A stretch of 64,000 nucleotides of DNA, taken from sequence record KJ019095.1; one strand, written 5' to 3'. The position numbers were made by a program, and so were the translations under genes. Positions 1 to 48,257 of the stretch are shown here, piece after piece. The notes beneath the pieces are model-generated. The model ran no database searches, was not told the DNA's origin, and was given only the letters and a program-made list of their open reading frames with translations. Each line of letters starts with the position of its first letter. The stretch's first letter is position 1.

Positions 1-2
1 GT

Positions 3-332
3 CTATATGAATGGGTGGTGTCCTTTGACCTTAACTCCCTGTATCCTCACCTACTAATGCAATACAACATCTCTCCAGAAACATTGATGGAAGAGAGGTG
101 TCCTAATATCTCCATTGAAAAGGTTCTCAATGAAGAAGTAACCTTTGAGATGTATAAAGACTATGCTGTTTGTCCTAATGGGGCAATGTATCGCAAAGAT
201 GTCCGCGGGTTCCTACCAACCCTAATGGAAAAGATGTATGATGAACGAAAGGCGTTCAAACAAAAGATGTTGAAGTCCAAACAAATCCTCGTTGATATCG
301 AGGCTGAAATGAAAAGAAGAGGTGTATTATGA
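3..332 (+). CDS. gp43: DNA polymerase gp43, N-terminal subunit (5' end outside window)
   Basis: PolB motif A (SFDLNSLYP) and GFLPTLMEKMYDER; stops in the fingers domain at KRRGVL*. Confidence 0.95.
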   Translation, partial: LYEWVVSFDLNSLYPHLLMQYNISPETLMEERCPNISIEKVLNEEVTFEMYKDYAVCPNGAMYRKDVRGFLPTLMEKMYDERKAFKQKMLKSKQILVDIEAEMKRRGVL

Positions 333-487
333 GTTTTCGTCACAAAACATATGGTGGTCTAGTTCATTATGACCACAATGATAAGATTATAGTCATTGAA
401 CGTCGATTGAATCCAATGCAACATCACGCTATGCTTGTGAGTAAGTTGAAGGAAGAGTATCCAGAGTATCAAGTAGTTACTGGATAG
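329..487 (+). CDS. 52-aa hypothetical protein inside split gp43
   Basis: Manual translation MSFRHKTYGG...YQVVTG; ATGA overlap with the gp43 stop, GAGGTG SD upstream. Confidence 0.65.
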   Translation: MSFRHKTYGGLVHYDHNDKIIVIERRLNPMQHHAMLVSKLKEEYPEYQVVTG

Positions 488-702
488 TGAGTGGTTTAGT
501 TGCTGAGATTATGCAAGTCGTTACTATGATTACTATGCTATTCAATATGTGCAATAGTAATGAGTTCAACAGACAAGCATGTATGAAAGACTGGGATACT
601 TGGTTATTACCTGAGATATCCCGTGCGTGGCAAATTAAAACAGGTCAGGAAGCCCCTTACCAAAACGAGGAAGATGTGGTAGAATGGCACCAACAGCAGT
701 GA
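487..702 (+). CDS. hypothetical protein inside split gp43
   Basis: ORF track; N-terminal hydrophobic stretch; coupled to neighbouring genes. Confidence 0.7.
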   Translation: MSGLVAEIMQVVTMITMLFNMCNSNEFNRQACMKDWDTWLLPEISRAWQIKTGQEAPYQNEEDVVEWHQQQ

Positions 703-703
703 G

Positions 704-1873
704 GTGTTTATCGGTTATCTTATTGGTGGTTCGAGTGAAGGACCCGATGAGGAGATTGTACAATCAGATAGTGACTATTCTAAACTATCTGATAAGCAAC
801 TGCAATACCTAAGAGCACAAACCATAAAGGATATTGCTAAGTTTTATAACTTCCAGCAAGTAAGGAAAATTACCCTAAACTCCGCTTATGGTGCTTTGGG
901 TAACCAATACTTCAGATACTACAAACTGGCGAACGCGGAGGCAGTGACCTTCTCTGGTCAGTTAAGTATCCGTTGGATTGAGAATAAGATGAATGGATTC
1001 ATCAATGAGATTCTAAAAACAGAGGGTAAGGATTATGTGATCGCCTCTGATACTGACTCTATCTACATTAACTTTGGTGATGTGGTAGATAAGTTCTTGA
1101 AGAAGTTTGATGGTGATAAGGAGAAGACTGTATCAATGGTAGATAAGATCTGTAAGGATCAACTAGAACCCTTCATTGATAAGTGCTATTCTCAGTTGGG
1201 TGAGTATGTGAATGCATACGAACAGAAGATGCAGATGAAGAGAGAGAATATTGCAGACAGGGGTATCTGGACAGCAAAGAAGAGATATATCCTAAACGTA
1301 TGGGATAGTGAGGGTGTTCGTTATGAGGAACCCAAACTGAAGATGATGGGTATTGAGGCTGTGAAGTCATCTACACCTGCCCCTTGTAGAACTATGATCA
1401 AGGATGCTCTCCGTATTATCATTGAGAAATCTGAGGATGAAGTCATTGACTACATTGATGATTGTAGGAAGAAGTTCAAACAGATGAAACCAGAGGAGAT
1501 CGCGTTTCCTCGTTCCGTTAGTGATATGATCAAGTTTCGTTCTGGGACAACAATATATGCTAAGAGTACTCCTATGCATGTGAGGGGGGCGTTACTATTC
1601 AATCATCACATTAAGAAGGGTGGGTTGGAGAACAAGTATTCTCTCATCAATAGTGGTGAGAAGATCAAGTTCTGCTACCTCAAGATTCCTAATCTAATTG
1701 GTGAGAATGTTATCTCATTCATCTCCGACTTTCCTAGGGAACTTAAGTTGGAGAAGTATGTTGATTATGATACCCAATTCAATAAAGCATTCCTAGATCC
1801 ACTCAAGATCATCTTGGATGCTATTGGTTGGAACTGTGAGAAGCAGATGTCCTTGGAGTCATTTTTTACCTGA
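704..1873 (+). CDS. gp43: DNA polymerase gp43, C-terminal subunit
   Basis: Motif B (KITLNSAYG), motif C (ASDTDSIY), KKRY, C-terminal clamp-binding tail SLESFF. Confidence 0.95.
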   Translation: MFIGYLIGGSSEGPDEEIVQSDSDYSKLSDKQLQYLRAQTIKDIAKFYNFQQVRKITLNSAYGALGNQYFRYYKLANAEAVTFSGQLSIRWIENKMNGFINEILKTEGKDYVIASDTDSIYINFGDVVDKFLKKFDGDKEKTVSMVDKICKDQLEPFIDKCYSQLGEYVNAYEQKMQMKRENIADRGIWTAKKRYILNVWDSEGVRYEEPKLKMMGIEAVKSSTPAPCRTMIKDALRIIIEKSEDEVIDYIDDCRKKFKQMKPEEIAFPRSVSDMIKFRSGTTIYAKSTPMHVRGALLFNHHIKKGGLENKYSLINSGEKIKFCYLKIPNLIGENVISFISDFPRELKLEKYVDYDTQFNKAFLDPLKIILDAIGWNCEKQMSLESFFT

Positions 1874-6384: not shown

Positions 6385-6458
6385 GGGTTAATAGCTCAGC
6401 TGGACAGAGCAACGCTCTTCTAAAGCGTCGGTCGTTGGTTCGAATCCAACTTAACCCG
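6385..6458 (+). tRNA. tRNA-Arg(TCT)
   Basis: Acceptor stem GGGTTAA/TTAACCC, anticodon arm ACGCT-CTTCTAA-AGCGT, GGTTCGAATCC; CCA not encoded. Confidence 0.95.
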
Positions 6459-6480
6459 TTGGGGTCTAATTAACCCCATA

Positions 6481-6665
6481 GGATGTGACAGAATGAACCG
6501 TTTGGTTAATACCGGTCATTGTATAGTAGGGAAGGCTGTGGTGGCCGCCAGAAAGACTAGGAGACTAGAGTTCTGAGAACCCATACCAGGGTCCCGAAAG
6601 TTCAGAGGTATTACTATTCTTAGTATGACCCCTCTGTTGGAGGTAAAAAGATAATCCTCCCATCC
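6481..6665 (+). ncRNA. large structured RNA, probably manA RNA motif
   Basis: Closed by GGATG/CATCC with internal CAGAGG/CCTCTG and GGAGG/CCTCC stems; lies between tRNAs as recalled for cyanophage manA RNAs; family assignment from memory. Confidence 0.6.
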
Positions 6666-6671
6666 ACCCAA

Positions 6672-6743
6672 TCCACAATAGCTCAGCGGTAGAGTCGGCG
6701 ACTGTTAATCGCCTTGTCCCTGGTTCGAATCCAGGTTGTGGAG
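6672..6743 (+). tRNA. tRNA-Asn(GTT)
   Basis: Acceptor stem TCCACAA/TTGTGGA, anticodon arm GGCGA-CTGTTAA-TCGCC. Confidence 0.95.
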
Positions 6744-33841: not shown

Positions 33842-34072
33842 ATGAGAACTACATCCTTCCTAAGGTATCTTGGAAATACCTTACTAGTGTTGGGTCATTT
33901 CACACTCCTTTGGGGGGATACACAGACCGCCTTGACTATCAAAATCATAGGTGGTCTTTCTTTGTTACCCTTTGCCATCTCCTGGAAGTTGTGGGATGTT
34001 GTGGCACTTGAGTTAATATTTGGAGGTATGGATGTAACCAAGTTCATCCAGCTGGTGTTTTCTAACTCCTAG
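33842..34072 (+). CDS. small multi-TM membrane protein
   Basis: Three hydrophobic segments. Confidence 0.7.
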   Translation: MRTTSFLRYLGNTLLVLGHFTLLWGDTQTALTIKIIGGLSLLPFAISWKLWDVVALELIFGGMDVTKFIQLVFSNS

Positions 34073-34098
34073 GGTTTCTTTATTCCCTTACAAAGATG

Positions 34099-34142
34099 AA
34101 GTGGCGCACCTGATTGGCAAACCCAAAAATATGTGTTATACT
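34099..34142 (+). promoter_or_regulatory. early-type promoter with upstream AAGTGGCGCA box
   Basis: AAGTGGCGCA-5-TTGGCA-17-TATACT. Confidence 0.75.
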
Positions 34143-34267: not shown

Positions 34268-34564
34268 ATGAAAGCCGACGCACAACTAGAACACCACGCC
34301 AATTGCTGGAATGCTATTCGAAATAATGATAAGGAATACTTTAAGATAGGAGTTGGTGTTTATAAAACTATCAACGCTGATAGGGAATACTATATCAATA
34401 GTCGTATTGAAACTGATAAGAATAGTGATATATCAGAGATGGATCAAGTGAAAGAAGCCCACTCCAAACACTTAAGTTATTTTATTGGATACAAATCAGA
34501 AGTAACAGTTGAAGCTATCAGTAGTGATTGGAAATCTACCCTATACCGGGTTACTACCTGCTAG
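34268..34564 (+). CDS. hypothetical protein
   Basis: ORF track; start adjusted. Confidence 0.65.
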
Positions 34565-34584: not shown

Positions 34585-35595
34585 ATGCATGTTGTGATGA
34601 AAGCTTTAATCTCTGGTATAACTGGGCAGGATGGATCCTATCTTGCTGAACTTCTACTGAAGAAGGGGTATGAAGTCCATGGTATTATTCGTAGAACCTC
34701 CTCGTTTAATACAGGAAGAATCGATCATATCTTCGATCAGTTACACCTCCACTACGGGGATTTGACTGACTCCCTGAACATAGTCTCTATCATTAAGGAA
34801 GTAGAACCTGATGAGATCTACAACCTAGGGGCACAGAGTCATGTGAAAGTATCTTTCGAGGAACCTGAATATACAGCACAGACTGATGCTCTGGGAACCC
34901 TAAGAGTATTGGAGGCAGTTCGTCTCCTAGGTATGACAGATAGGGTCCGTATCTACCAGGCATCCACCAGTGAGTTGTATGGGTTGGTACAAGAGACACC
35001 ACAGAAAGAAACAACACCTTTCTACCCACGATCTCCATATGGCGTAGCTAAACTCTATGGATATTGGATTATAAAGAACTACAGAGAGAGTTATGGGATG
35101 CACGCCAGTAGTGGTATTCTATTCAACCATGAGTCACCACGACGGGGTGAGACTTTCGTAACCCGTAAGATTACTAGGGGACTATCCCGTATTAGTACAG
35201 GACTACAGGATTGTCTATACCTAGGTAATCTAAACTCAAGACGAGATTGGGGTCATGCTGAAGACTATGTGGAGGCTATGTGGTTGATGTTACAACAGGA
35301 AACTCCTGATGACTATGTGATTGCCACAGGTAAAGAGTATTCAGTGAAGGACTTTGTAGAGGCATCTGCTGAATACTTTGGTATGAAGATTGAGTGGCAG
35401 GGTGAAGGATTGGATGAAGTGGGTATAGATAGATTTACAAAGAAGGTTGTCGTTCGTGTGAGTGACAAATACTTCAGACCAGCAGAGGTTGAAACTCTCT
35501 GGGGTGATCCCACTAAGGCTAAAGAGGTATTGGGTTGGAAACCTAATCATACCTTTGCTTCCCTAGTAGAAGATATGTGTATCTACGGTCAGTAA
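34585..35595 (+). CDS. gmd: GDP-mannose 4,6-dehydratase
   Basis: [36 protein letters not shown]. Confidence 0.96.
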
Positions 35596-35597
35596 TT

Positions 35598-36524
35598 ATG
35601 GAAAAAGGTGCAACGGTAGCAGTATTTGGTTCGGGTGGATTGGCTGGAAGTGCCATCACCAGGGCACTCAGGTGTTCTTTTGGGGGGTATAAGATTCTTA
35701 CTCCTAGGAGTAAAGAACTAGACCTAAGAGAACAAGCAGATGTTCGTAGTTGGTTTAAGCATAACAAAGTTGATTATGTATTCTTAGCTGCTGCCTTAGT
35801 TGGTGGTATCATGGCTAACAAGACTAGAAAGGCAGAGTTCTTACATGACAATCTAATGATGCAGTGTAATGTAATTGACTCTGCATACTATAGTGGAGTG
35901 AAGAAACTTCTATTCCTAGGTACTTCTTGTATCTATCCAGCAGGAAGGCACCATCCACTAGTGGAACATGAACTACTCACAGGACTATTAGAACCAACCA
36001 ATGACGCATACGCAATCGCAAAGATCGCAGGGATCAAACAATGTGACTTCTACCGAGAACAATATGGATTTGATGCTATCTCTATCATGCCTCCTAATCT
36101 ATATGGTCCTGGAGATAATTTCAATGAGGGATCAGGACATGTCCTCGCCTCATTGATGAATAGGTTTCACCTAGCGAAGGAAGCAGGTGCATCTAGAGTT
36201 GAATGTTGGGGTGATGGGACACCTATGAGGGAGTTCCTATATGTGGATGACTTAGCAGATGCTTCCTTATACTTTATGGATAGTTATAGTGAGTCTGGGC
36301 ACATTAATACTGGGACTGGTAGGGATGTAACTATCAAACAACTAGCGGAGACTATTGCTGATGTAGTTGGATACAAAGGTGAGATAGGTTGGGATACAAC
36401 TAAACCCAACGGAAACCCAAGGAAACTACTTGACAGCAGTAGGGCAAACCTGTTAGGATGGGAACCCAAGGTTAAATTTGAAGACGGAATCAAACTCACA
36501 TACAACTGGTATCTAGCACAATGA
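35598..36524 (+). CDS. fcl: GDP-L-fucose synthase family epimerase/reductase (Fcl/WcaG/ColC)
   Basis: GSGGLAG, AALVGGI, LGTSCIYP, YAIAK, PNLYGP. Confidence 0.93.
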   Translation: MEKGATVAVFGSGGLAGSAITRALRCSFGGYKILTPRSKELDLREQADVRSWFKHNKVDYVFLAAALVGGIMANKTRKAEFLHDNLMMQCNVIDSAYYSGVKKLLFLGTSCIYPAGRHHPLVEHELLTGLLEPTNDAYAIAKIAGIKQCDFYREQYGFDAISIMPPNLYGPGDNFNEGSGHVLASLMNRFHLAKEAGASRVECWGDGTPMREFLYVDDLADASLYFMDSYSESGHINTGTGRDVTIKQLAETIADVVGYKGEIGWDTTKPNGNPRKLLDSSRANLLGWEPKVKFEDGIKLTYNWYLAQ

Positions 36525-37714
36525 CAAAGATTACAAATGGATATACGTGGCCTCTTATGAAGGACACTGTGACCAAAAGAGATAGGTTGAGGATGGCAAA
36601 GTTTATCCTCACCAGTGATAGACTAACACAAGGTAAAGAAGTTCGTAAGTTTGAGGAGCAGTGGAGTGAGTGGCTTGGAGTTAAACATTCTCTTTTTGTT
36701 AGCAGTGGCAGTACCGCTAACCTACTTCTTGTGTCTGCTTGGAAGGAATTATACGAGATCCCAGACCAGTCGAAAGTAATTGTACCTGCTTGTACTTGGG
36801 TAACTAACGTTGCTCCTATTATCCAGTGTGGATTGACTCCAGTCTTTTGTGATATCAATCTAGAAGATTACTCTTTTGATTTGGATAAACTACAAGAACT
36901 ACGTGATGAATATCACGATGACATCAGAGGTATCTTTGTTACTCACCTCCTAGGATTTCCTGCTAATGTGGAAAAGTTTCGTGATGTTTTCCCCGACGCT
37001 CATATTCTAGAAGATGTATGTGAGAGTCACGGAGCAGTCCTCCCTAGTGGTGATAAGGCGGGAACCTTTGATGTTGGTGGCACATTTAGTTTCTACTTTG
37101 GGCACCACATGACTACCATTGAAGGTGGTATGGTGAGTACTAATGATCCAGAACTCTATGATCTAATGAGAATGAAGCGTTCTCATGGGTTAGCGAGAGA
37201 ATCACTATACTTTGAAACATACAAAGAGAAGTATCCTGATGTAAATCCACAGTTTCTCTTCGTTACTGAGGGATATAACTTCCGTAATACTGATCTAGCT
37301 GCTGTATTAGGACAGTCTCAACTGAAGAGACTAGACAGTATGATTGGGATTCGTAACAGGAACTATGAGTTATACCAACAATTACTAAAGAAACACGAAC
37401 ATGACCTTACACATGAGTATGGTGGTTCTTTCTATATCCCCTCCACACAGGGGGATGTAAGTAGTTTCTGTTTTCCATTTGTAGTTGATAATATGCACTG
37501 CTATCTTAAGTTAAAAGAACTTCTAGAAGAATACTATGTTGAGTATCGACCTATTGTGAGTGGTAACCTCCTACGACAACCATTCTTGAGAGAATATTCT
37601 GCTGAGTGTCCCAAGGCAGATATAGCCCATGAAAAGGGACTATATATTGGGAATAATCACTTTGTAGATGAGTCTAACTTTCACATGCTAGATGAGATTT
37701 TGAGCCAACTTTGA
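36521..37714 (+). CDS. DegT-fold PLP enzyme of ColD type (GDP-4-keto-6-deoxymannose 3-dehydratase-like)
   Basis: SSGSTAN, EDVCESHGA, SFYFGHHMTTIEGG with His at the usual Lys position. Confidence 0.85.
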   Translation: MTKITNGYTWPLMKDTVTKRDRLRMAKFILTSDRLTQGKEVRKFEEQWSEWLGVKHSLFVSSGSTANLLLVSAWKELYEIPDQSKVIVPACTWVTNVAPIIQCGLTPVFCDINLEDYSFDLDKLQELRDEYHDDIRGIFVTHLLGFPANVEKFRDVFPDAHILEDVCESHGAVLPSGDKAGTFDVGGTFSFYFGHHMTTIEGGMVSTNDPELYDLMRMKRSHGLARESLYFETYKEKYPDVNPQFLFVTEGYNFRNTDLAAVLGQSQLKRLDSMIGIRNRNYELYQQLLKKHEHDLTHEYGGSFYIPSTQGDVSSFCFPFVVDNMHCYLKLKELLEEYYVEYRPIVSGNLLRQPFLREYSAECPKADIAHEKGLYIGNNHFVDESNFHMLDEILSQL

Positions 37715-37715
37715 T

Positions 37716-38510
37716 ATGACATTTTCATTTAATCATATGGGCAACTTGGGGCATCTGGGAAACCAGATGTTTCAGTATGCCGCACTCATTGGTATGGGGG
37801 CTAAGCATGGGAGGAGTATTTGTATCCCCCATAAACAAAGTTTTGGGCAATCATACTACCAGGATCTTCGTAGTAATATCTACGATGCTTTCAACCTCTC
37901 ACCCAATGGTGTAGGTATCAGTAGGTTCCCCACAGTTCAGGAAGGTAGTTTCCACTTTGATGGAAACTTATTTGAGAACCCACCAGAGGAGAACTGTAAC
38001 CTCTATGGATTCTTCCAGAGTGAAAAGTGGTTCTCACATATTAAAGAAGGTATTAGGAAAGAGTTCACTCTAAAGGATGAGTACCGGGAAGTGGCACAAC
38101 TGATGAGAGAACAACTCTCTGGTCAGGTTGTTGCTATTCATGTTCGTAGAACTGACTACCTATCCAATCCAAACCACGGAGCATTGGGTTTAGATTACTA
38201 TGAGAAGGCACTGGAGTTGGTTCCTAATAACCTTACAGTAGTTGTATTCACTGATGATCCAGAGTGGGCTAAAGAACAACCACTCTTTCCAGATGATAGG
38301 TTCTTTGTATCAGAGACAGACTGTCCCTATACAGACCTTGCTCTTATGAGTATGTGTGATTATCATATTATTGCCAACAGTTCATACTCTTGGTGGGGTG
38401 CATACTTATCTGATAGTAAGAAAGTAATTGCTCCTAAACAGTGGTTTGGGGAACCACTTAAAACAAATAACCTGAAAGATCTTTATTGTGATGGGTGGGT
38501 GAAACTATGA
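37716..38510 (+). CDS. GT11 alpha-1,2-fucosyl/colitosyltransferase
   Basis: GHLGNQMFQYA, GFFQSE, HVRRTDY, NSSYSWWGAYL. Confidence 0.92.
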   Translation: MTFSFNHMGNLGHLGNQMFQYAALIGMGAKHGRSICIPHKQSFGQSYYQDLRSNIYDAFNLSPNGVGISRFPTVQEGSFHFDGNLFENPPEENCNLYGFFQSEKWFSHIKEGIRKEFTLKDEYREVAQLMREQLSGQVVAIHVRRTDYLSNPNHGALGLDYYEKALELVPNNLTVVVFTDDPEWAKEQPLFPDDRFFVSETDCPYTDLALMSMCDYHIIANSSYSWWGAYLSDSKKVIAPKQWFGEPLKTNNLKDLYCDGWVKL

Positions 38511-39130
38511 GTAACTTTGCAAGTGCTAAACAGTTTATCAAGAATGGTATTGATACACAACAGGAGTCTATCTCTGGTGGTGGCAGCACTATGGCTTCCA
38601 CAGTTGCCTTCAGATACTTCCTACCAAAGTATATCAAACAGTATGGTATTGAGAGTATCTTAGACATTGGGTGTGGTGACTGGCATTGGATGTCTACTAT
38701 CAGAGAAGAGTTTCCTGATGTAGACTATGAGGGATGGGATGCCTCTGAGGATATGATTAATCCCATGACTGAGAAGTATGGAACAGAGAATACCAGGTTT
38801 GAGGTAAAGGATATCATTGATAACAAGTATCCCAAAGTGGATTTGGTTATCGCTCGTGATGTTCTATTCCACCTCAAAGAAGATTACCTAAAGAAGGTTC
38901 TCAAGAATATCAGTAAGGCAGGTGTGAAGTATCTACTAGCAACTACCTTCCCAGGTTTACCTAAGAACGAAGAACTCACTCCTAAGAAATATGACGGTTG
39001 GGGATTCAGACCAATCAATCTGGATATCGAGCCTTATAATATGAAAGATTATTGTATCAATGATTTCAAGGAAACCACAGCCCCCAACAGGGGGTATCAT
39101 CGTCATGTGTATTTGTATGAGGTAAAATGA
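38507..39130 (+). CDS. class I SAM-dependent methyltransferase
   Basis: SGGGS, ILDIGCGD, DLVIARDVLFH. Confidence 0.85.
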   Translation: MSNFASAKQFIKNGIDTQQESISGGGSTMASTVAFRYFLPKYIKQYGIESILDIGCGDWHWMSTIREEFPDVDYEGWDASEDMINPMTEKYGTENTRFEVKDIIDNKYPKVDLVIARDVLFHLKEDYLKKVLKNISKAGVKYLLATTFPGLPKNEELTPKKYDGWGFRPINLDIEPYNMKDYCINDFKETTAPNRGYHRHVYLYEVK

Positions 39131-39279
39131 AGATCGAAATTGAACTCTCTAAAGATGTAGAATACAAAGGAGAGAAACTAGGTGAGTATATCTGGAACCT
39201 AGAAGAGGGAATTAATCATGTTACTGGTTTTGGTGATTCACTTGAGGAATGTTTTAAGGAAATTGTGAGGTTTAGATGA
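39127..39279 (+). CDS. 50-aa hypothetical protein
   Basis: Manual translation; ATGA overlaps at both ends. Confidence 0.6.
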   Translation: MKIEIELSKDVEYKGEKLGEYIWNLEEGINHVTGFGDSLEECFKEIVRFR

Positions 39280-40007
39280 AGAAAGTAGCTATTATCTTTA
39301 TTGGAACAGGTAGATACCTAGAGTTTCTACCAAAGTATTATGAACAGGCAGAAGCAAACCTCTTCCCTGACAGACCCAAACACTACTATGTGTTTACTGA
39401 TGGTGACTTAGGTAATGAACTACCTGACAATGTAACTGTATACGAACAGGAACATCTCCAATGGCCATACATCACCCTCTATCGTTTCGGTATTATCCAG
39501 AAACACCTAGAGGAGATTGAGAAGGAGTGTGGTTTCCTACTCTTTATGGATGCTGATACACAGGTAGTATCCCCTGTATCGTTCGATGAAGTATTCAGGA
39601 AGGGAAAACCCTATACAGGTGTTCATCACCCCTGCCACGCCCTGAATATGCCACCACACAATGAGTTTCCTGGTAGTCTAGAAACTAATACAGCATCCAA
39701 GGCAGCATGTAAACCTGGTGATGACTTCTCTGTATATTGGCAAGGTTGTGTATGGGGTGGAAACATAAAGGGTGCTCGTAAGATTATTGATACTCTCCAC
39801 CACAGAACTAAACAAGATGAGGAGAATGGAATCATTGCCAAGTGGCATGATGAAAGTCATATCAATAGATACTTCCTTGACAACAAAGATAAGGTGAATA
39901 CCCTATCACCTAGTTTCGCATACCCAGAGTCCTTCACTGAGTATATGGAAGACTACGAACCTAAGATTGTACACCTAGCAAAAGAGAATTCTAAGTATCA
40001 GGTATGA
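39276..40007 (+). CDS. GT6 (ABO-like) glycosyltransferase
   Basis: IGTGRY, YYVFTD, WPYITLYRF, DAD, HP, WHDESHIN. Confidence 0.92.
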   Translation: MKKVAIIFIGTGRYLEFLPKYYEQAEANLFPDRPKHYYVFTDGDLGNELPDNVTVYEQEHLQWPYITLYRFGIIQKHLEEIEKECGFLLFMDADTQVVSPVSFDEVFRKGKPYTGVHHPCHALNMPPHNEFPGSLETNTASKAACKPGDDFSVYWQGCVWGGNIKGARKIIDTLHHRTKQDEENGIIAKWHDESHINRYFLDNKDKVNTLSPSFAYPESFTEYMEDYEPKIVHLAKENSKYQV

Positions 40008-40627
40008 GTTACTTCACAGATTATGACAACGAATTCACAGTATTCGAGGCACCAAAGAACGGGGGAACTACTCTCCGTCTTTGGATATACTACGCAGGAA
40101 CAGGGGAGTTGGTGAAGTCAGCGGAGTCTGAATACTACGCTGGCACTGGAGAAACATACAAACAACTCCAAGAGTGGGGTTATGTGAATGGGGAATACGA
40201 GAACCCCAAGACCCAGATGGTATGTATCAAGAGAGACCCTGTAGATAGGTTTGTAAGTGCCTTCTATGATAAGGTAATCAAAGAGGGGAGAATCAAAGTA
40301 ACCATCGATGAGTTTCTCTCAAACTATGAAGAGATACTTGATAAGTCTACCCTCAAGATGAATGATGGTAAGACTAACTTCATGAAGTTTCACTTTGAGT
40401 CACAGACATATCACTTCGGTAAAGATAAAGATCTATATCATAAGGTCTTTGATATCTCAGAGGTTGGTACTGGTCTGAAGAAGTATCTGGAGGGTAAGTG
40501 GAATATAGAACTACCTGATGTCCATGCTAGAAATAGTGGTGGTGGTCGGAAGTTTGATCTCTCCAGGGGACAACTGAATAAGGTGAAGGAAATCTACACA
40601 CAGGACTATTATAATGGCTGGTACTGA
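40004..40627 (+). CDS. sulfotransferase family protein
   Basis: PKNGGTT (5'PSB), RDPVDRFVSAF (3'PB). Confidence 0.85.
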   Translation: MSYFTDYDNEFTVFEAPKNGGTTLRLWIYYAGTGELVKSAESEYYAGTGETYKQLQEWGYVNGEYENPKTQMVCIKRDPVDRFVSAFYDKVIKEGRIKVTIDEFLSNYEEILDKSTLKMNDGKTNFMKFHFESQTYHFGKDKDLYHKVFDISEVGTGLKKYLEGKWNIELPDVHARNSGGGRKFDLSRGQLNKVKEIYTQDYYNGWY

Positions 40628-41399
40628 AGGATATATCCTGATAGGTATTGGTGATAGGTATCTACAGATGACAGAGAACCTCACTAAAACTCTAAAGAAA
40701 CATGGAGATAATAGAGGATCCCTAACTATCACAAGATCGGATAATAGGGAACTCTATAGTGAGTGTAACACTGAGTTTGAGAGGAATGGAACTCTACCTA
40801 AGATTACCTTAGACAGATACTTACCTTTTGATCACAATATATTCCTAGATGCTGATATGTTATGTGTAGGTGATACACAACATGTATGGGATCTATTCAG
40901 GAGTAGTGATCAGTTTGTTCAACAGGTAGGATGTTTGGGAAGAGATCCTAACTTCCACGCTCACCAGTATGAGAGTGAGTTGGGTTTTGAGATTCCTAGA
41001 GTCCATGGTGGTTGTATCTACATCAATAGAGAGAAACTAGACCCAGGGTTCTTTCCCTATATGAGAGAGTGTTTCCTAAACTATAAACAAATATTTCATA
41101 ATAGTGGTCTAACCTATAAGAATAGTAGACCAGATCAACCACTATACGCTCTAGCAAATGGTATGTGGGGATTCAAACCTGTGGATCTATACACTAACCC
41201 TATCATGACTATTGTGAATGATAGTACCCCACCCCCACTAGATAGTGTGTTCTTCAATAAGAAGAGGGGTCCTAAGTTAGATACTCCTGTTCCCTTTGTT
41301 CATGTATTCCGTGGAGAAGAGGGTATGTCTAAGGGTTATACTAGAGGTGACCAGAAGATGTTGTTGTCCCATTATGATTACTACCTGAACTATGAATAA
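40614..41399 (+). CDS. GT-A fold glycosyltransferase (GT8-like)
   Basis: NIFLDADML, GG, DQP. Confidence 0.65.
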   Translation: MAGTEGYILIGIGDRYLQMTENLTKTLKKHGDNRGSLTITRSDNRELYSECNTEFERNGTLPKITLDRYLPFDHNIFLDADMLCVGDTQHVWDLFRSSDQFVQQVGCLGRDPNFHAHQYESELGFEIPRVHGGCIYINREKLDPGFFPYMRECFLNYKQIFHNSGLTYKNSRPDQPLYALANGMWGFKPVDLYTNPIMTIVNDSTPPPLDSVFFNKKRGPKLDTPVPFVHVFRGEEGMSKGYTRGDQKMLLSHYDYYLNYE

Positions 41400-42180
41400 A
41401 ACTATATGGATGTGTTGGTTCCAGGGTTGGGATAAGGCACCAGAGATTACAGAGAAGTGTTTAGAGTCCTGGAAACACTACAATAGTGATTGGGATATTG
41501 TTCTACTAGATGAATCCAACTACAAGGATTACATCTCCATTGATAAAGAACTACCAGGACTGAAGACAAACTATATCTCACTGGGTGATATCCTTCGTCT
41601 CTTTCTACTAAAAGAGCATGGTGGAGTATGGGCAGATGCAACTATCTTCTGCAACAAACCAGTGGATTGGGTTTTGGATTATGAGGATTCTTTCGTCTTC
41701 ACCAGGAAGGATAAGATGATTGCCTCTTGGTTTGTTGCTGCTCAGAAAGATTCCCATGTTGTAGATGTATGGTATAATAAGATGTTAGAGTTCTGGAAGT
41801 ATCGTATGGAAAATACAGATACTTTCGAGCAACAATATGGTTGGATACACGCTTTGTTCCGTCAGTCCTACGCTCAGGATAAGGGGTTCAGGGATATTGT
41901 AGATAGTATGGATAAGATTGATTGCATGAGTGATGGTCAATCTAGAGGTAAGGGTCCGCACTTCTTTGCACCCTACAGTAAATACTTCTACAACCCTATC
42001 AGTGACACGATAAAGAATCGTATAGACTCTAAAGTTGATCCACTATATAAGTTGTCTTACAAGGCAAACACAGACTGGAGAAGTCCAGAGAACAGGGGTA
42101 TCCACCCAGCAGACCAAAAGATTATGTTGGAATATCCAACTAATAGTGAACTACATTATCTACTCAACACATTAAAATGA
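41392..42180 (+). CDS. capsular polysaccharide synthesis-family (GT32-like) glycosyltransferase
   Basis: TIWMCWFQG, DILRLFLLKEHGGVWADAT. Confidence 0.85.
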   Translation: MNKTIWMCWFQGWDKAPEITEKCLESWKHYNSDWDIVLLDESNYKDYISIDKELPGLKTNYISLGDILRLFLLKEHGGVWADATIFCNKPVDWVLDYEDSFVFTRKDKMIASWFVAAQKDSHVVDVWYNKMLEFWKYRMENTDTFEQQYGWIHALFRQSYAQDKGFRDIVDSMDKIDCMSDGQSRGKGPHFFAPYSKYFYNPISDTIKNRIDSKVDPLYKLSYKANTDWRSPENRGIHPADQKIMLEYPTNSELHYLLNTLK

Positions 42181-43082
42181 CAAATAAATCATTGGTTACC
42201 GGTGGCGCGGGTTTCATCGGGTCACATATTGTGGACCGACTTATTACACTAGGACATCAAGTCGTAGTGATTGACAATGAATCCTCTGATGGTCATGATG
42301 AATACCATTGGAACAGAAGCGGACAAGTACAAAACCATAAGGCAGACATTCGTGACTACGATGCAATCAAACACTTGTTTGGTGGAGTCAATAATGTTTT
42401 TCACCTTGCCGCTAAAGCATCAGTACAGGCGTCAGTAGATAACCCCCTACCAACTATTGCCACACAGGTAATGGGAACCGCCAATGTATTGGAGGCAGCA
42501 CGACAATCTGGTGTGAGTAAGTTTGTATATTCCTCTACTAGTGCTTGTTATGGTAACAACAACCCCATTCCTAATGTAGAAACGATGAGAGAAGATCCTC
42601 TCAACGCCTATGCTATTGGTAAGTTATCTGGGGAACAACTAGTTCGTGCCTATCACTACCTCTATGGTATGAAGACGGTGGCATTCCGTTATACCAATGT
42701 ATATGGGGAGAGGGCAAGACATGTAGGACACTATGCTCCTGCTGTTAGTAAGTTCCTAAAGATGAGAGCACAGGGAGAACCCCTAACTATCTTTGGTGAT
42801 GGTGCCCAACGCCGGGACTTTATTCATGTATCTGATGTAGTCAACGCTAACTGCTGTATTACCTATGAGGAACTAGAGCAGTGGGGTGAGACCTATAACA
42901 TTGGTTATGGTAAGAACTGGAGTATCCAAGAGATCGCAGACTCTATCAGTCAGGAACAGATTCACCTATCTGCTCGTACTGGTGAGATGCGTGAGACCCT
43001 TGCTGATATTGGGAAGGCAAAGGCAGAGTTGATGTGGAAACCAAAGACTGACATCATGGATTGGATTAGGGTACAACTCTGA
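42177..43082 (+). CDS. NAD-dependent nucleotide-sugar epimerase/dehydratase
   Basis: VTGGAGFIGSH, YAIGK, RYTNVYG, RDFIHV. Confidence 0.93.
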   Translation: MTNKSLVTGGAGFIGSHIVDRLITLGHQVVVIDNESSDGHDEYHWNRSGQVQNHKADIRDYDAIKHLFGGVNNVFHLAAKASVQASVDNPLPTIATQVMGTANVLEAARQSGVSKFVYSSTSACYGNNNPIPNVETMREDPLNAYAIGKLSGEQLVRAYHYLYGMKTVAFRYTNVYGERARHVGHYAPAVSKFLKMRAQGEPLTIFGDGAQRRDFIHVSDVVNANCCITYEELEQWGETYNIGYGKNWSIQEIADSISQEQIHLSARTGEMRETLADIGKAKAELMWKPKTDIMDWIRVQL

Positions 43083-43699
43083 TGCCAGTATTTCAGAAGG
43101 ACAACAAGAAAGTTCTATTCATCCATGTTCCCAAGACTGCAGGAAGTTCTGTGAATAAACTCTTTGTGAATAATGGATATGAAATGTCCTACTATTCTGA
43201 GAGTTCTAAAGATCTATACAATGGATTATGTGGACCACAACATCTGGACTCACTTCTATTGGAAGATGAGTTCCAAGATTTCTCTCAGTTTGATTATATC
43301 TTCTCTATCTTCAGAGACCCAGTAGACAGACATCTATCTGAGTTCACCTGGGCACCCTGGGGACTAATGGGTAGAAACATCTACACACCAGAAAGATTTG
43401 ATGAGTGGTGTCCTAAGATATTCAGAGCGTATCAGGACTCACCATATAGGATGGATAATCACATTAGACCTCAACATGAGTTCTATGTCAATGGATGTGA
43501 TGTGTATGACTATGAAAATATCAATACACTCACAGAGAAACTATGTGATAAAATAGGTCTAGATAATAAAGAGATGCCATATGAAAGGTCTTCACGATAT
43601 GATAGTGAGGATTATGTCATCTATGAAGATACTTACAATTGTATTACTGAATTTTACAAAGGAGACTATCAATGGCAAAAGGATTCAGTCCTGTTGTGA
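43082..43699 (+). CDS. sulfotransferase family protein
   Basis: FIHVPKTAGSS, RDPVDR. Confidence 0.85.
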   Translation: MPVFQKDNKKVLFIHVPKTAGSSVNKLFVNNGYEMSYYSESSKDLYNGLCGPQHLDSLLLEDEFQDFSQFDYIFSIFRDPVDRHLSEFTWAPWGLMGRNIYTPERFDEWCPKIFRAYQDSPYRMDNHIRPQHEFYVNGCDVYDYENINTLTEKLCDKIGLDNKEMPYERSSRYDSEDYVIYEDTYNCITEFYKGDYQWQKDSVLL

Positions 43700-44550
43700 C
43701 TAAGGATAAGAACAAGTCCCAGTTCAAACTACAGGGTGTTCCTAGGATTTACTACATCAGTTTAGATGATCATGCTCATCGTCAAGACTATATGGAGTCC
43801 CAGTTTGAAGACTGGGGCATCACTAACTTCGAAAGAATCTCTGCTCATGATGGTAGAGGTGATAATGATCTGAGTGATATTCTCAAAGGATCTTATCCAA
43901 AGATGATGAGTTCTGGTGAGGTTGGTTGTGTAACCTCTCACCTAAAGGCACTAAAACACTGGTTAGATACTACAGAGGGTGAAGAGTTTCTCCTTATGAT
44001 GGAGGATGATTGTGATATCTCCACTGCTTCCCACTGGGGGTTCTCCTGGAGAGAGTTTGTTGGGAATATTCCATCCCATGTAGATTGTGTTCAGTTAGCA
44101 GTTATCAACCCATCAGAACTACATATCAAACTCCATATCAGGTTTGTGAATGATTTCTCCACTGCCTCATACCTAATCCGTAGATCACACGCAGAGAAGT
44201 TAGTTAGACTCTATTGTAGGGGTGATAAGTATAAACTTGATAGTGATATCAAACCCAGAGCAGTTGCTGATGATCTTATCTACAACTCTGGTGTGACTCT
44301 TGCTATGCCTCTATTTGCCTTCAAGATTGCACTAGGTTCCAGTATCCATGATGTCCATATCAATACCTTCCACAAGAGTAGTCATGATGGTATCTGGGAG
44401 TTTTGGAAGAAAACAGCACCAACTATTGAGAACTGGAAACCATTCTTCAACTATGATGCCTATCTGGGAACCCTACCACCCAATGTTGTGGTTCAACAAT
44501 GGCAGCAAAAACAGGAATCCAAAGCAAAAGATTCAGGGGCTTCGCAATAG
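43672..44550 (+). CDS. GT25 glycosyltransferase
   Basis: YYISLD...R, GEVGCVTSH, MEDD. Confidence 0.88.
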   Translation: MAKGFSPVVTKDKNKSQFKLQGVPRIYYISLDDHAHRQDYMESQFEDWGITNFERISAHDGRGDNDLSDILKGSYPKMMSSGEVGCVTSHLKALKHWLDTTEGEEFLLMMEDDCDISTASHWGFSWREFVGNIPSHVDCVQLAVINPSELHIKLHIRFVNDFSTASYLIRRSHAEKLVRLYCRGDKYKLDSDIKPRAVADDLIYNSGVTLAMPLFAFKIALGSSIHDVHINTFHKSSHDGIWEFWKKTAPTIENWKPFFNYDAYLGTLPPNVVVQQWQQKQESKAKDSGASQ

Positions 44551-48109: not shown

Positions 48110-48157
48110 AAACACATAAATAAGATATGTAAAGTTCTTATTACAACACTTCCATCT

Positions 48158-48257
48158 AACCGAGACCTACGGGGAAGTAAAATACGTCTCTAATACCTAC
48201 ACCGGAGGGTGGTGTAGGAATAATACTATCGTCAGCTCCCCCTGGCACTACTTACCC
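48158..48257 (+). ncRNA. structured psbA 5' UTR, probably PhotoRC-II motif
   Basis: GAGAC/GTCTC and CCTACACC/GGTGTAGG stems upstream of psbA; family name from memory. Confidence 0.65.

Follow-up and report, generated by a model that had tools for sequence, protein, structure and literature searches.

A predicted ColD-like 3-dehydratase within the GDP-fucose gene module of cyanophage ACG-2014f and a plausible viral route to GDP-L-colitose

GDP (guanosine diphosphate)-fucose genes and "LPS genes" (lipopolysaccharide genes) of large cyanophages have already been described (e.g., PMC9602691). The modules of P-SSM2, S-SCSM1, S-SRM01, and S-SKS1, all of them large T4-like cyanophages, contain gmd, fcl, and fucosyltransferase genes, with a family 11 glycosyltransferase (GT11) gene nearby and a wcaG RNA upstream. 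In Escherichia coli O55, two enzymes related to this pathway are ColD (WbdK, the GDP-4-keto-6-deoxy-D-mannose 3-dehydratase, present also in Yersinia pseudotuberculosis; PDB 2gms, 3b8x, 2r0t, and 3gr9) and ColC (WbdJ, the GDP-L-colitose synthase). ColD binds its sugar as a Schiff base with pyridoxamine 5'-phosphate (PMP), uses a histidine to expel the 3-hydroxyl group, releases the product by hydrolysis, and renews PMP from glutamate with no reductase partner (PMC8987622). The enzyme E1 (RfbH/DdhC; CDP-6-deoxy-L-threo-D-glycero-4-hexulose 3-dehydrase, CDP being cytidine diphosphate) belongs to the same superfamily and is also of the histidine type, with homologues in the glycan clusters of cyanophages S-H68 and S-B43, but it differs in carrying a [2Fe-2S] motif, depending on a reductase, and using a CDP-sugar as its substrate. 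Here, we analyzed a 64,000-nucleotide stretch of sequence record KJ019095.1 (the window), in which a gene for a predicted ColD-like 3-dehydratase stands in the order gmd-fcl-colD-GT11 (Table 1). The gmd-fcl pair is the one known from the cyanophage GDP-fucose modules, with Fcl proteins 53 to 56% identical, but those four phages have no ColD-like gene, whereas ACG-2014f, the source of the window, and S-CAM7 carry one between fcl and GT11.

The window derives from Synechococcus phage ACG-2014f isolate Syn7803US34 (KJ019095.1; Kyanoviridae, Atlauavirus), a T4-like cyanomyovirus, and its position 1 is position 124001 of the record. The 9.1-kb stretch around the module was 100% identical to Syn7803US34 and 95 to 100% identical to 44 other ACG-2014f isolates, and the window contains the T4-like core genes gp43, UvsX, gp41, gp61, and NrdAB as well as hli, psbA, and a tail fiber gene. 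This nucleotide identity and the core genes confirmed that the module is phage encoded, as stated in the original prediction made for this DNA.

The protein encoded between fcl and GT11 is a member of the DegT family (PF01041, DegT_DnrJ_EryC1, 205.7 bits), that is, of the fold-type I family dependent on pyridoxal 5'-phosphate (PLP) or PMP. The first histidine of the motif SFYFGHHMTTIEGG, His195, aligns to the catalytic histidine of E. coli ColD, His188. It is exactly at this column, where the perosamine synthase (Per) of E. coli O157 has a lysine, that the mutated PDB chains H188N (3b8x) and H188K (2r0t) depart from the wild type. For this and the following comparisons, we used as references the ColD, ColC, GT11, Gmd, and Fcl proteins of E. 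coli O55:H7 CB9615, together with Per and Fcl of O157 Sakai. A histidine in place of the Schiff-base lysine is the hallmark of ColD (PMC8987622), and the original prediction had read this position correctly. Relatives were searched for among 1.84 billion cluster representatives, with 642 proteins found at an E value of ≤1e-30, and we aligned 123 sequences, namely, the window protein, its S-CAM7 homologue, E. coli ColD, Per, and the 119 closest representatives that had a suitable length. At the catalytic column, histidine was present in 121 of the 121 nearest sequences (full-length representatives plus phage proteins). The equivalents of ColD residues D159, E162, S183, H188, R219, and R331, mapped onto the phage protein via pairwise alignment, were invariant or nearly so across the alignment and are all kept in the phage protein.

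In a maximum likelihood tree with SH-aLRT (Shimodaira-Hasegawa-like approximate likelihood ratio test) support, Lys-type enzymes, including O157 Per, fell outside a His-type clade with a support of 100. Within it, a ColD-like clade (89) contained E. coli ColD as well as the phage protein and had an E1-like pair (93) as its sister group. Inside the ColD-like clade, the phage protein grouped with the S-CAM7 homologue in a 59-sequence subclade (98). The phylogenetic check against ColD, PerA, and RfbH types that had been proposed for this enzyme thus placed it in the Fe-S-free part of the His-type clade, apart from both E1-type and Lys-type enzymes. One could still suppose that the module is a plain GDP-fucose pathway and that the DegT-like protein is an aminotransferase such as GDP-perosamine synthase, as its DegT_DnrJ_EryC1 match and its label in RefSeq and PHROGs would have it. 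This is barely credible for an enzyme with histidine for lysine, whose nearest relatives share that histidine without exception and whose clade leaves the Lys-type enzymes outside, and we rejected the aminotransferase identity on these grounds.

The names given to this family deserve some comment. The phage protein is called "aminotransferase" in RefSeq and PHROGs, just as the original prediction had expected of automated pipelines, and "hypothetical protein" in GenBank. The genuine, experimentally characterized ColD of E. coli O55 (L005:10701-11867, O55:H7 CB9615) is itself named "DegT/DnrJ/EryC1/StrS family aminotransferase" by PGAP (Prokaryotic Genome Annotation Pipeline), so the aminotransferase label is uninformative. 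Along the same lines, PGAP calls ColC of O55:H7 CB9615 a "GDP-L-fucose synthase family protein." Models for ColD and ColC are missing from NCBIfam, and this accounts for the wrong label of the phage gene. The S-CAM7 homologue is named "CDP-4-keto-6-deoxy-D-glucose-3-dehydrase" (putative) in its GenBank record, while the UniRef name of the ACG-2014f protein was visible only as "CDP-4-k...," presumably the same CDP-type name.

These last names point to another candidate, an E1/RfbH-type CDP-4-keto-6-deoxyglucose 3-dehydrase with an Fe-S cluster and a reductase, perhaps the product of a ferredoxin gene located ca. 0.2 kb past the cluster. The best NCBIfam match of the protein was indeed the RfbH model (184.6 bits), but this is far from the cutoff of 423, and genuine E. 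coli ColD also scores best on RfbH (263 bits) in this database, which has no model of its own for ColD. The ferredoxin gene lies among hli genes, a setting typical of photosynthetic auxiliary genes. The C-x-C-x7-C Fe-S motif of E1, found ca. 30 residues past the histidine, was absent from all 123 aligned sequences. In the window protein, whose lack of the motif agrees with the original prediction, the stretch from residue 168 to residue 316 contains no cysteine. The E1-type 3-dehydratase of S-H68, our positive control, showed the motif and scored 238 bits against E1. Among PDB sequences, the best match of the window protein was ColD (2gms; 178 bits; E value, 3e-51), followed by a putative NDP-4-keto-6-deoxyglucose 3-dehydratase (NDP, nucleoside diphosphate; 125 bits), E1 (108 bits; 5e-30), and perosamine synthase (95 bits; 4e-26). 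Pfam and NCBIfam profiles detected no CDP-glucose or dTDP (deoxythymidine diphosphate)-glucose pathway genes in the window, including no RfbF-type cytidylyltransferase and no CDP-glucose dehydratase, and the gene is linked to gmd instead. The two annotated "cytidyltransferases" of the window were considered as RfbF-like candidates and rejected, since they are not of the sugar-1-phosphate nucleotidyltransferase type. We therefore rejected the E1/CDP identity, based on the missing Fe-S motif, the order of the PDB scores, the S-H68 control, and the lack of CDP-glucose genes, and consider it highly improbable.

E1-type 3-dehydratases with the Fe-S cysteine motif are encoded in S-H68 (L027:5842-7137) and also in S-B43, RB11-B, and RN05-S, in a cluster that contains dTDP-sugar genes as well as a GT11 gene. 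Given these enzymes and the ColD-like protein of ACG-2014f, both 3,6-dideoxy-sugar chemistries appear to be represented in cyanophages. A phage making a 3,6-dideoxysugar had been called notable in the original prediction. A phage-borne 3-dehydratase as such is not new, as the S-CAM7 GenBank record and the E1-type enzymes of other cyanophages attest. We found no paper that ties a phage or cyanophage to colitose or ColD, which is weak evidence, as our coverage of subscription journals was thin.

Structure prediction agreed with the sequence comparisons. An AlphaFold (AF2) model built from 58 homologues had a mean pLDDT (predicted local distance difference test) of 95.4, and in a Foldseek comparison of the model to the PDB, the top 12 matches were all ColD chains (TM [template modeling] scores of 0.83 to 0.89), with GDP-perosamine synthase, an enzyme of the same GDP-sugar, in next place and then E1. 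The phage protein shares with ColD the fold (TM scores of 0.86 to 0.89), the catalytic histidine, and the lack of an Fe-S motif, and its gene is likewise near gmd, an Fcl-family gene, and a GT11 gene. There are differences too, starting with a separate subclade and a host replicon that is a lytic T4-like phage, and some of them count against assigning ColD function. Support for the whole ColD-like clade is moderate (89), and none of the 59 sequences in the subclade is, to our knowledge, characterized. The phage protein shares only ca. 32% identity with E. coli ColD, whereas characterized ColD-type enzymes are 62 to 67% identical among themselves (PMC10440746), and Ser187 of ColD is replaced by Gly194. 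However, the Ser187 site varies across the family (G in 56 sequences, S in 48, and A in 17), and this residue is not conserved among characterized dehydratases (10.1101/2021.09.04.459008), so we did not take it as defining, and Gly194 is ordinary for the family. Taken together, the product of this gene is very probably a ColD-type, Fe-S-free 3-dehydratase of a distant subfamily.

To evaluate the substrate, we looked at the gene neighborhoods of relatives. Those in viruses were encoded by 206 IMG/VR contigs, and the counts that follow refer to the best 80 of the 206 (52 to 100% identity). All 80 proteins kept the FYFGHH motif. A gmd gene was found within 6 kb in 69 of them, usually in the order gmd-(fcl)-colD, an Fcl-like gene (at least 35% identity) was present in 39, and a GT11 gene lay within 6 kb in 36. 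Among cellular genomes (GTDB species representatives, scanned with peptide patterns from the phage protein), 20 loci had relatives at 37 to 55% identity, from scattered bacteria and from DPANN or other archaea. A gmd homologue adjoined the gene in 13 of these, and 4 more had only an Fcl-like gene. No cyanobacterial homologue appeared in the GTDB scan, although, with patterns taken from the phage protein, its absence from the hosts is not shown thereby. Natural fusions were also found. Gmd-ColD fusion proteins were represented by P0141 (identical to L020:483-2645) and by open reading frames (ORFs) in L013, L015, and L016, from metagenome-assembled genomes of Nanoarchaeota and Pacearchaeota, while fusions of Fcl-like and ColD domains, in both domain orders, were found in the metagenomic proteins P0243, P0247, P0191, P0249, and P0254. 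The linkage to gmd and these fusions are indirect but strong evidence that the substrate would be the product of Gmd, GDP-4-keto-6-deoxy-D-mannose. Gmd itself scored above its equivalog cutoff (TIGR01472, 554 bits with a cutoff of 415; PF16363, 505 bits) and is annotated as "GDP-D-mannose 4,6-dehydratase" in KJ019095.1.

A somewhat different setting was seen in L032 to L034 (the contigs with P0112), where a ColD-like gene with 58% identity belongs to a further viral contig of T4-like type and has a UvsX/RecA gene in its vicinity. The glycan cluster there is different and contains GT17- and CAP59-like transferases and a cytidylyltransferase/mannose-phosphate-isomerase-like protein.

The reductase of the module required closer inspection. 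The protein, a short-chain dehydrogenase/reductase (SDR), had E. coli GDP-fucose synthetase as its best PDB match (312 bits). It is closer to E. coli Fcl (49% identity) than to O55 ColC (38%), ColC and Fcl being 39% identical to each other. ColC belongs to the same Fcl-type SDR family, and alignments with both showed that the catalytic Cys, His, and Tyr-x3-Lys positions, i.e., the Cys/His acid/base pair and the Tyr-x3-Lys motif that ColC also has, are present in the phage enzyme. In a 22-sequence tree, it fell in an Fcl clade (96/95) together with E. coli Fcl and the Fcl proteins of P-SSM2, S-SCSM1, and S-SRM01, which lack ColD, whereas ColC was placed outside. The original prediction of an "Fcl-like ColC" must therefore be corrected, as this enzyme is not a ColC orthologue but a member of the genuine Fcl clade. 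When 60 more viral sequences were added, ColD-linked and ColD-less Fcl proteins interleaved (for example, the S-SRM01 Fcl was sister to the ColD-linked copy of L091), and we rejected a dedicated viral ColC lineage for this reason. Scores to NF047922, the Fcl model with a cutoff of 500, were 551 for E. coli Fcl, 455 to 474 for ColD-less cyanophage Fcl, 420 to 422 for ACG-2014f and S-CAM7, and 304 for ColC. Its cutoff was uninformative as a discriminator of Fcl and ColC, since ColD-less cyanophage Fcl also scored below 500. Another candidate for a finishing reductase, the second SDR of the cluster, was rejected because it is UDP (uridine diphosphate)-hexose 4-epimerase-like.

With a genuine Fcl, the phage module has almost certainly retained GDP-fucose synthesis, and an ordinary gmd-fcl module appears to have either gained or lost ColD. 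The original wording, a colitose-type pathway "rather than plain GDP-fucose," was overstated, and "in addition to GDP-fucose" would be more accurate. The layout also differs from that of E. coli O55, where colC-colD is set apart from gmd.

The pathway that we favor would be branched. Gmd would convert host GDP-mannose into GDP-4-keto-6-deoxy-D-mannose, which could have two fates. In one, the Fcl-type enzyme would turn it into GDP-L-fucose. In the other, the ColD-like enzyme would form a PMP-sugar Schiff base, His195 would act as the acid/base that expels the C3 hydroxyl, and hydrolysis would free GDP-4-keto-3,6-dideoxy-D-mannose, while PMP would be regenerated from glutamate independently of any Fe-S reductase. 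C5 epimerization and C4 reduction, again by the Fcl-type enzyme, would then yield GDP-L-colitose. Only these C5 and C4 steps remain on the 3-deoxy substrate, so such a role for Fcl is chemically reasonable, and gene linkage makes it plausible. We consider this branched scheme, with Fcl performing the last step of both GDP-fucose and GDP-colitose synthesis, likely. The family identities of the genes, the catalytic histidine, the missing Fe-S motif, the ColD-like fold and clade, and the linkage to gmd were observed directly, and the substrate, the role of Fcl in the last step, the product, the glycosidic linkage, and the glycan target are inferred. GDP-colitose as the end product is plausible, if only somewhat favored. 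On the other side of the balance, the reductase is Fcl type and not ColC type, proof that an Fcl takes a 3-deoxy substrate was found neither in our results nor in the literature retrieved, and we found no published experiment on the sugars of ACG-2014f.

The ColD-like enzyme might also be real and lead to something other than L-colitose, either another 3,6-dideoxy or amino-trideoxy sugar made with a host enzyme or a different phage enzyme or a product of another GDP-4-keto-6-deoxy substrate, for instance the heptose in the pathway of Campylobacter. There is documented precedent for ColD-type enzymes that use GDP-heptose (PMC10440746), the sole Fcl-family enzyme of the module is of genuine Fcl type, and SIS-domain and NDP-sugar synthase genes adjoin gmd-fcl in S-SRM01. 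In addition, ca. 16 viral contigs are arranged gmd-colD-SDR (L061, L071, L075, L078, L079, L082, L083, L085 to L087, L090, and others), and the SDR directly after ColD forms a clade of its own, ca. 24% identical to Fcl, with no counterpart in the window. This distant SDR may serve specifically to finish the 3-deoxy intermediate, hinting that a dedicated enzyme for this step exists elsewhere. However, the window has no heptose-nucleotide genes, Gmd scores above the equivalog cutoff for GDP-mannose dehydratase, and the second SDR resembles a UDP-hexose 4-epimerase and not a GDP-sugar reductase. The order gmd-fcl-colD-GT11 is also kept across many viral contigs that have no other reductase, and a 3,5-epimerase/4-reductase would need to perform only its C5 and C4 steps on a 3-deoxy substrate. 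We therefore regard a product other than colitose as unlikely and GDP-L-colitose as the better candidate.

Conservation of the block was examined at several distances. In S-CAM7, which belongs to another genus, gmd-fcl-colD-GT11 is kept at 65 to 80% identity (ColD, 65%; Fcl, 80%), while the downstream genes differ. Within the species, the ColD-like frame was intact in 45 ACG-2014f isolates, with 98.7 to 100% identity. The ratio of nonsynonymous to synonymous substitution rates (dN/dS) of the ColD-like gene was 0.21 compared to its closest metagenomic relative and 0.05 to 0.10 for the neighbors, indicating purifying selection, this being the single usable value, as dS was saturated for every other pair. 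In a close metagenomic relative (L036:6001-7167), the ColD-like protein was 84% identical to that of the window, versus 94 to 97% for the flanking gmd, fcl, and GT11 products, which suggests either a recombination mosaic or a faster evolution of the ColD-like gene. Being the most divergent gene of the block by this measure, it could be taken for a decaying or nonfunctional passenger in a GDP-fucose cluster. This is very improbable for a gene with an open frame in so many isolates, a dN/dS of 0.21, all of the near-invariant residues in place, an unbroken FYFGHH motif among the viral relatives, and a confident structure model.

The next gene encodes a GT11 alpha-1,2-type transferase, as originally predicted, and was verified by its match to PF01531 (Glyco_transf_11; 97.9 bits with a cutoff of 23.9), a class from which the sugar donor cannot be read. 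The protein is 32% identical (E value, 8e-32) to the GT11 of the E. coli O55 colitose cluster, which we take to be WbgN, the O55 alpha-1,2-colitosyltransferase, and which has the PGAP name "alpha-1,2-fucosyltransferase." The phage GT11 could add fucose and/or colitose in alpha-1,2 linkage to a galactose-type acceptor. Further elaboration of the glycan could fall to GT6, the remaining transferases, and the methyl- and sulfotransferases, either on an acceptor made by the host, be it LPS or a surface glycoconjugate, or on proteins of the virion. As GT6 enzymes use Fuc-alpha-1,2-Gal as their acceptor, one may reasonably guess at a branched glycan of the blood group kind.

The module lies at the 5' end of a glycan decoration operon, and all genes of the cluster are located on one strand, with their ends overlapping or abutting (Table 1). 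The gene positions of the original prediction held, and its gmd start at 34585 corresponds to an in-frame ATG upstream of the annotated gene. The cluster lacks genes for a flippase, a polymerase, an ABC exporter, an initiating transferase, or the supply of GDP-mannose, and the phage must therefore decorate an acceptor from the host or the virion. The two sulfotransferase-family genes (40004 to 40627 and 43082 to 43699) are not accompanied by a sulfate-activation gene in the cluster, while the S-CAM7 equivalent has an adenylylsulfate kinase (L003:10747-11316).

Table 1. Positions of the module, its upstream elements, and the rest of the glycan cluster, in window coordinates (CDS, coding sequence)
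Feature	Position	Strand	Basis
Putative wcaG-type cis-regulatory RNA, 5' edge of operon	34022-34115	+	Rfam RF01761, subthreshold
Small conserved phage ORF just upstream of gmd, function unassigned	34268-34564	+	GenBank CDS; phrog_3568; no Pfam match
Gmd, GDP-mannose 4,6-dehydratase	34597-35595	+	TIGR01472 equivalog, PF16363, KJ019095.1 annotation
Fcl-type GDP-4-keto-6-deoxymannose 3,5-epimerase/4-reductase	35598-36524	+	PDB, tree, identity to E. coli Fcl
ColD-like PMP/PLP-dependent nucleotide-sugar 3-dehydratase (predicted)	36521-37714	+	PDB, fold, clade, gmd linkage
Active-site motif SFYFGHHMTTIEGG, His195 for Schiff-base Lys	37088-37129 (His195 codon, 37103-37105)	+	Exact translation
GT11 alpha-1,2-fucosyl/colitosyl-type transferase	37716-38510	+	PF01531
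Remaining glycan decoration cluster	38507-44550	+	Pfam, NCBIfam, PHROGs, and PDB matches
Methyltransferase (followed by a small ORF)	38507-39130	+	
GT6	39276-40007	+	
Sulfotransferase-like gene (Sulfotransfer_2)	40004-40627	+	
Gene of unassigned function	40614-41399	+	
Caps_synth/GT32-like gene	41392-42180	+	
UDP-hexose 4-epimerase-like SDR	42177-43082	+	
Second sulfotransferase (Sulfotransfer_2)	43082-43699	+	
GT25	43672-44550	+	

In the unannotated gap upstream of the operon, we detected a match to the wcaG RNA motif (RF01761) over the full length of the model, with a score of 30.7 bits (gathering threshold, 42) and an E value of 0.0018. Strong wcaG RNAs were found at the syntenic site upstream of gmd in S-CAM7 (77 bits; L003:5028-5123) and S-SRM01 (101 bits; L030:2260-2357), and the 3' hairpin is shared, with compensatory changes. 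Two other RNA motifs were present on the plus strand of the window, a manA motif (6460 to 6670, 90 bits) between two tRNA genes (6385 to 6458 and 6672 to 6743), followed by two 2-oxoglutarate (2OG)-Fe(II) oxygenase genes, and a PhotoRC-II motif (48136 to 48231, 69 bits) in the psbA region. The gp43 DNA polymerase gene, at the start of the window (1 to 1873, plus strand), is annotated as two separate CDS (one ending at 332 and the other at 704 to 1873) with two small ORFs between them.

The phage enzyme adds a distant, virus-borne member to a known enzyme type of an established pathway, and its kind is spread widely through viral metagenomes. Viral auxiliary metabolic gene surveys will miss this ColD-like family, given the labels "aminotransferase," "hypothetical protein," and "CDP-...-3-dehydrase," while the natural Gmd-ColD and ColD/Fcl-like fusions provide independent evidence for the logic of the pathway. 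Confirmation of the colitose branch would establish the first virus-encoded route to a 3,6-dideoxyhexose of colitose type and show that one inserted gene can reroute a common phage GDP-fucose module. A broader and distinctly more tentative proposal is that large marine cyanophages and many uncultured viruses with gmd-fcl-colD-GT11 might make GDP-L-colitose during infection by means of one enzyme added to the GDP-fucose pathway, with Fcl as the synthase, and, with the help of GT6 and of methyl- and sulfotransferases, display a colitose-capped, blood-group-like, sulfated glycan on the cell or the virion. If true, a "rare" sugar of enterobacterial O antigens would be a common viral product at sea. 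With relatives in 206 IMG/VR contigs, the gene is not the curiosity of one isolate, and its sugars could bear on superinfection exclusion, receptor masking, and virion glycosylation in the ocean.

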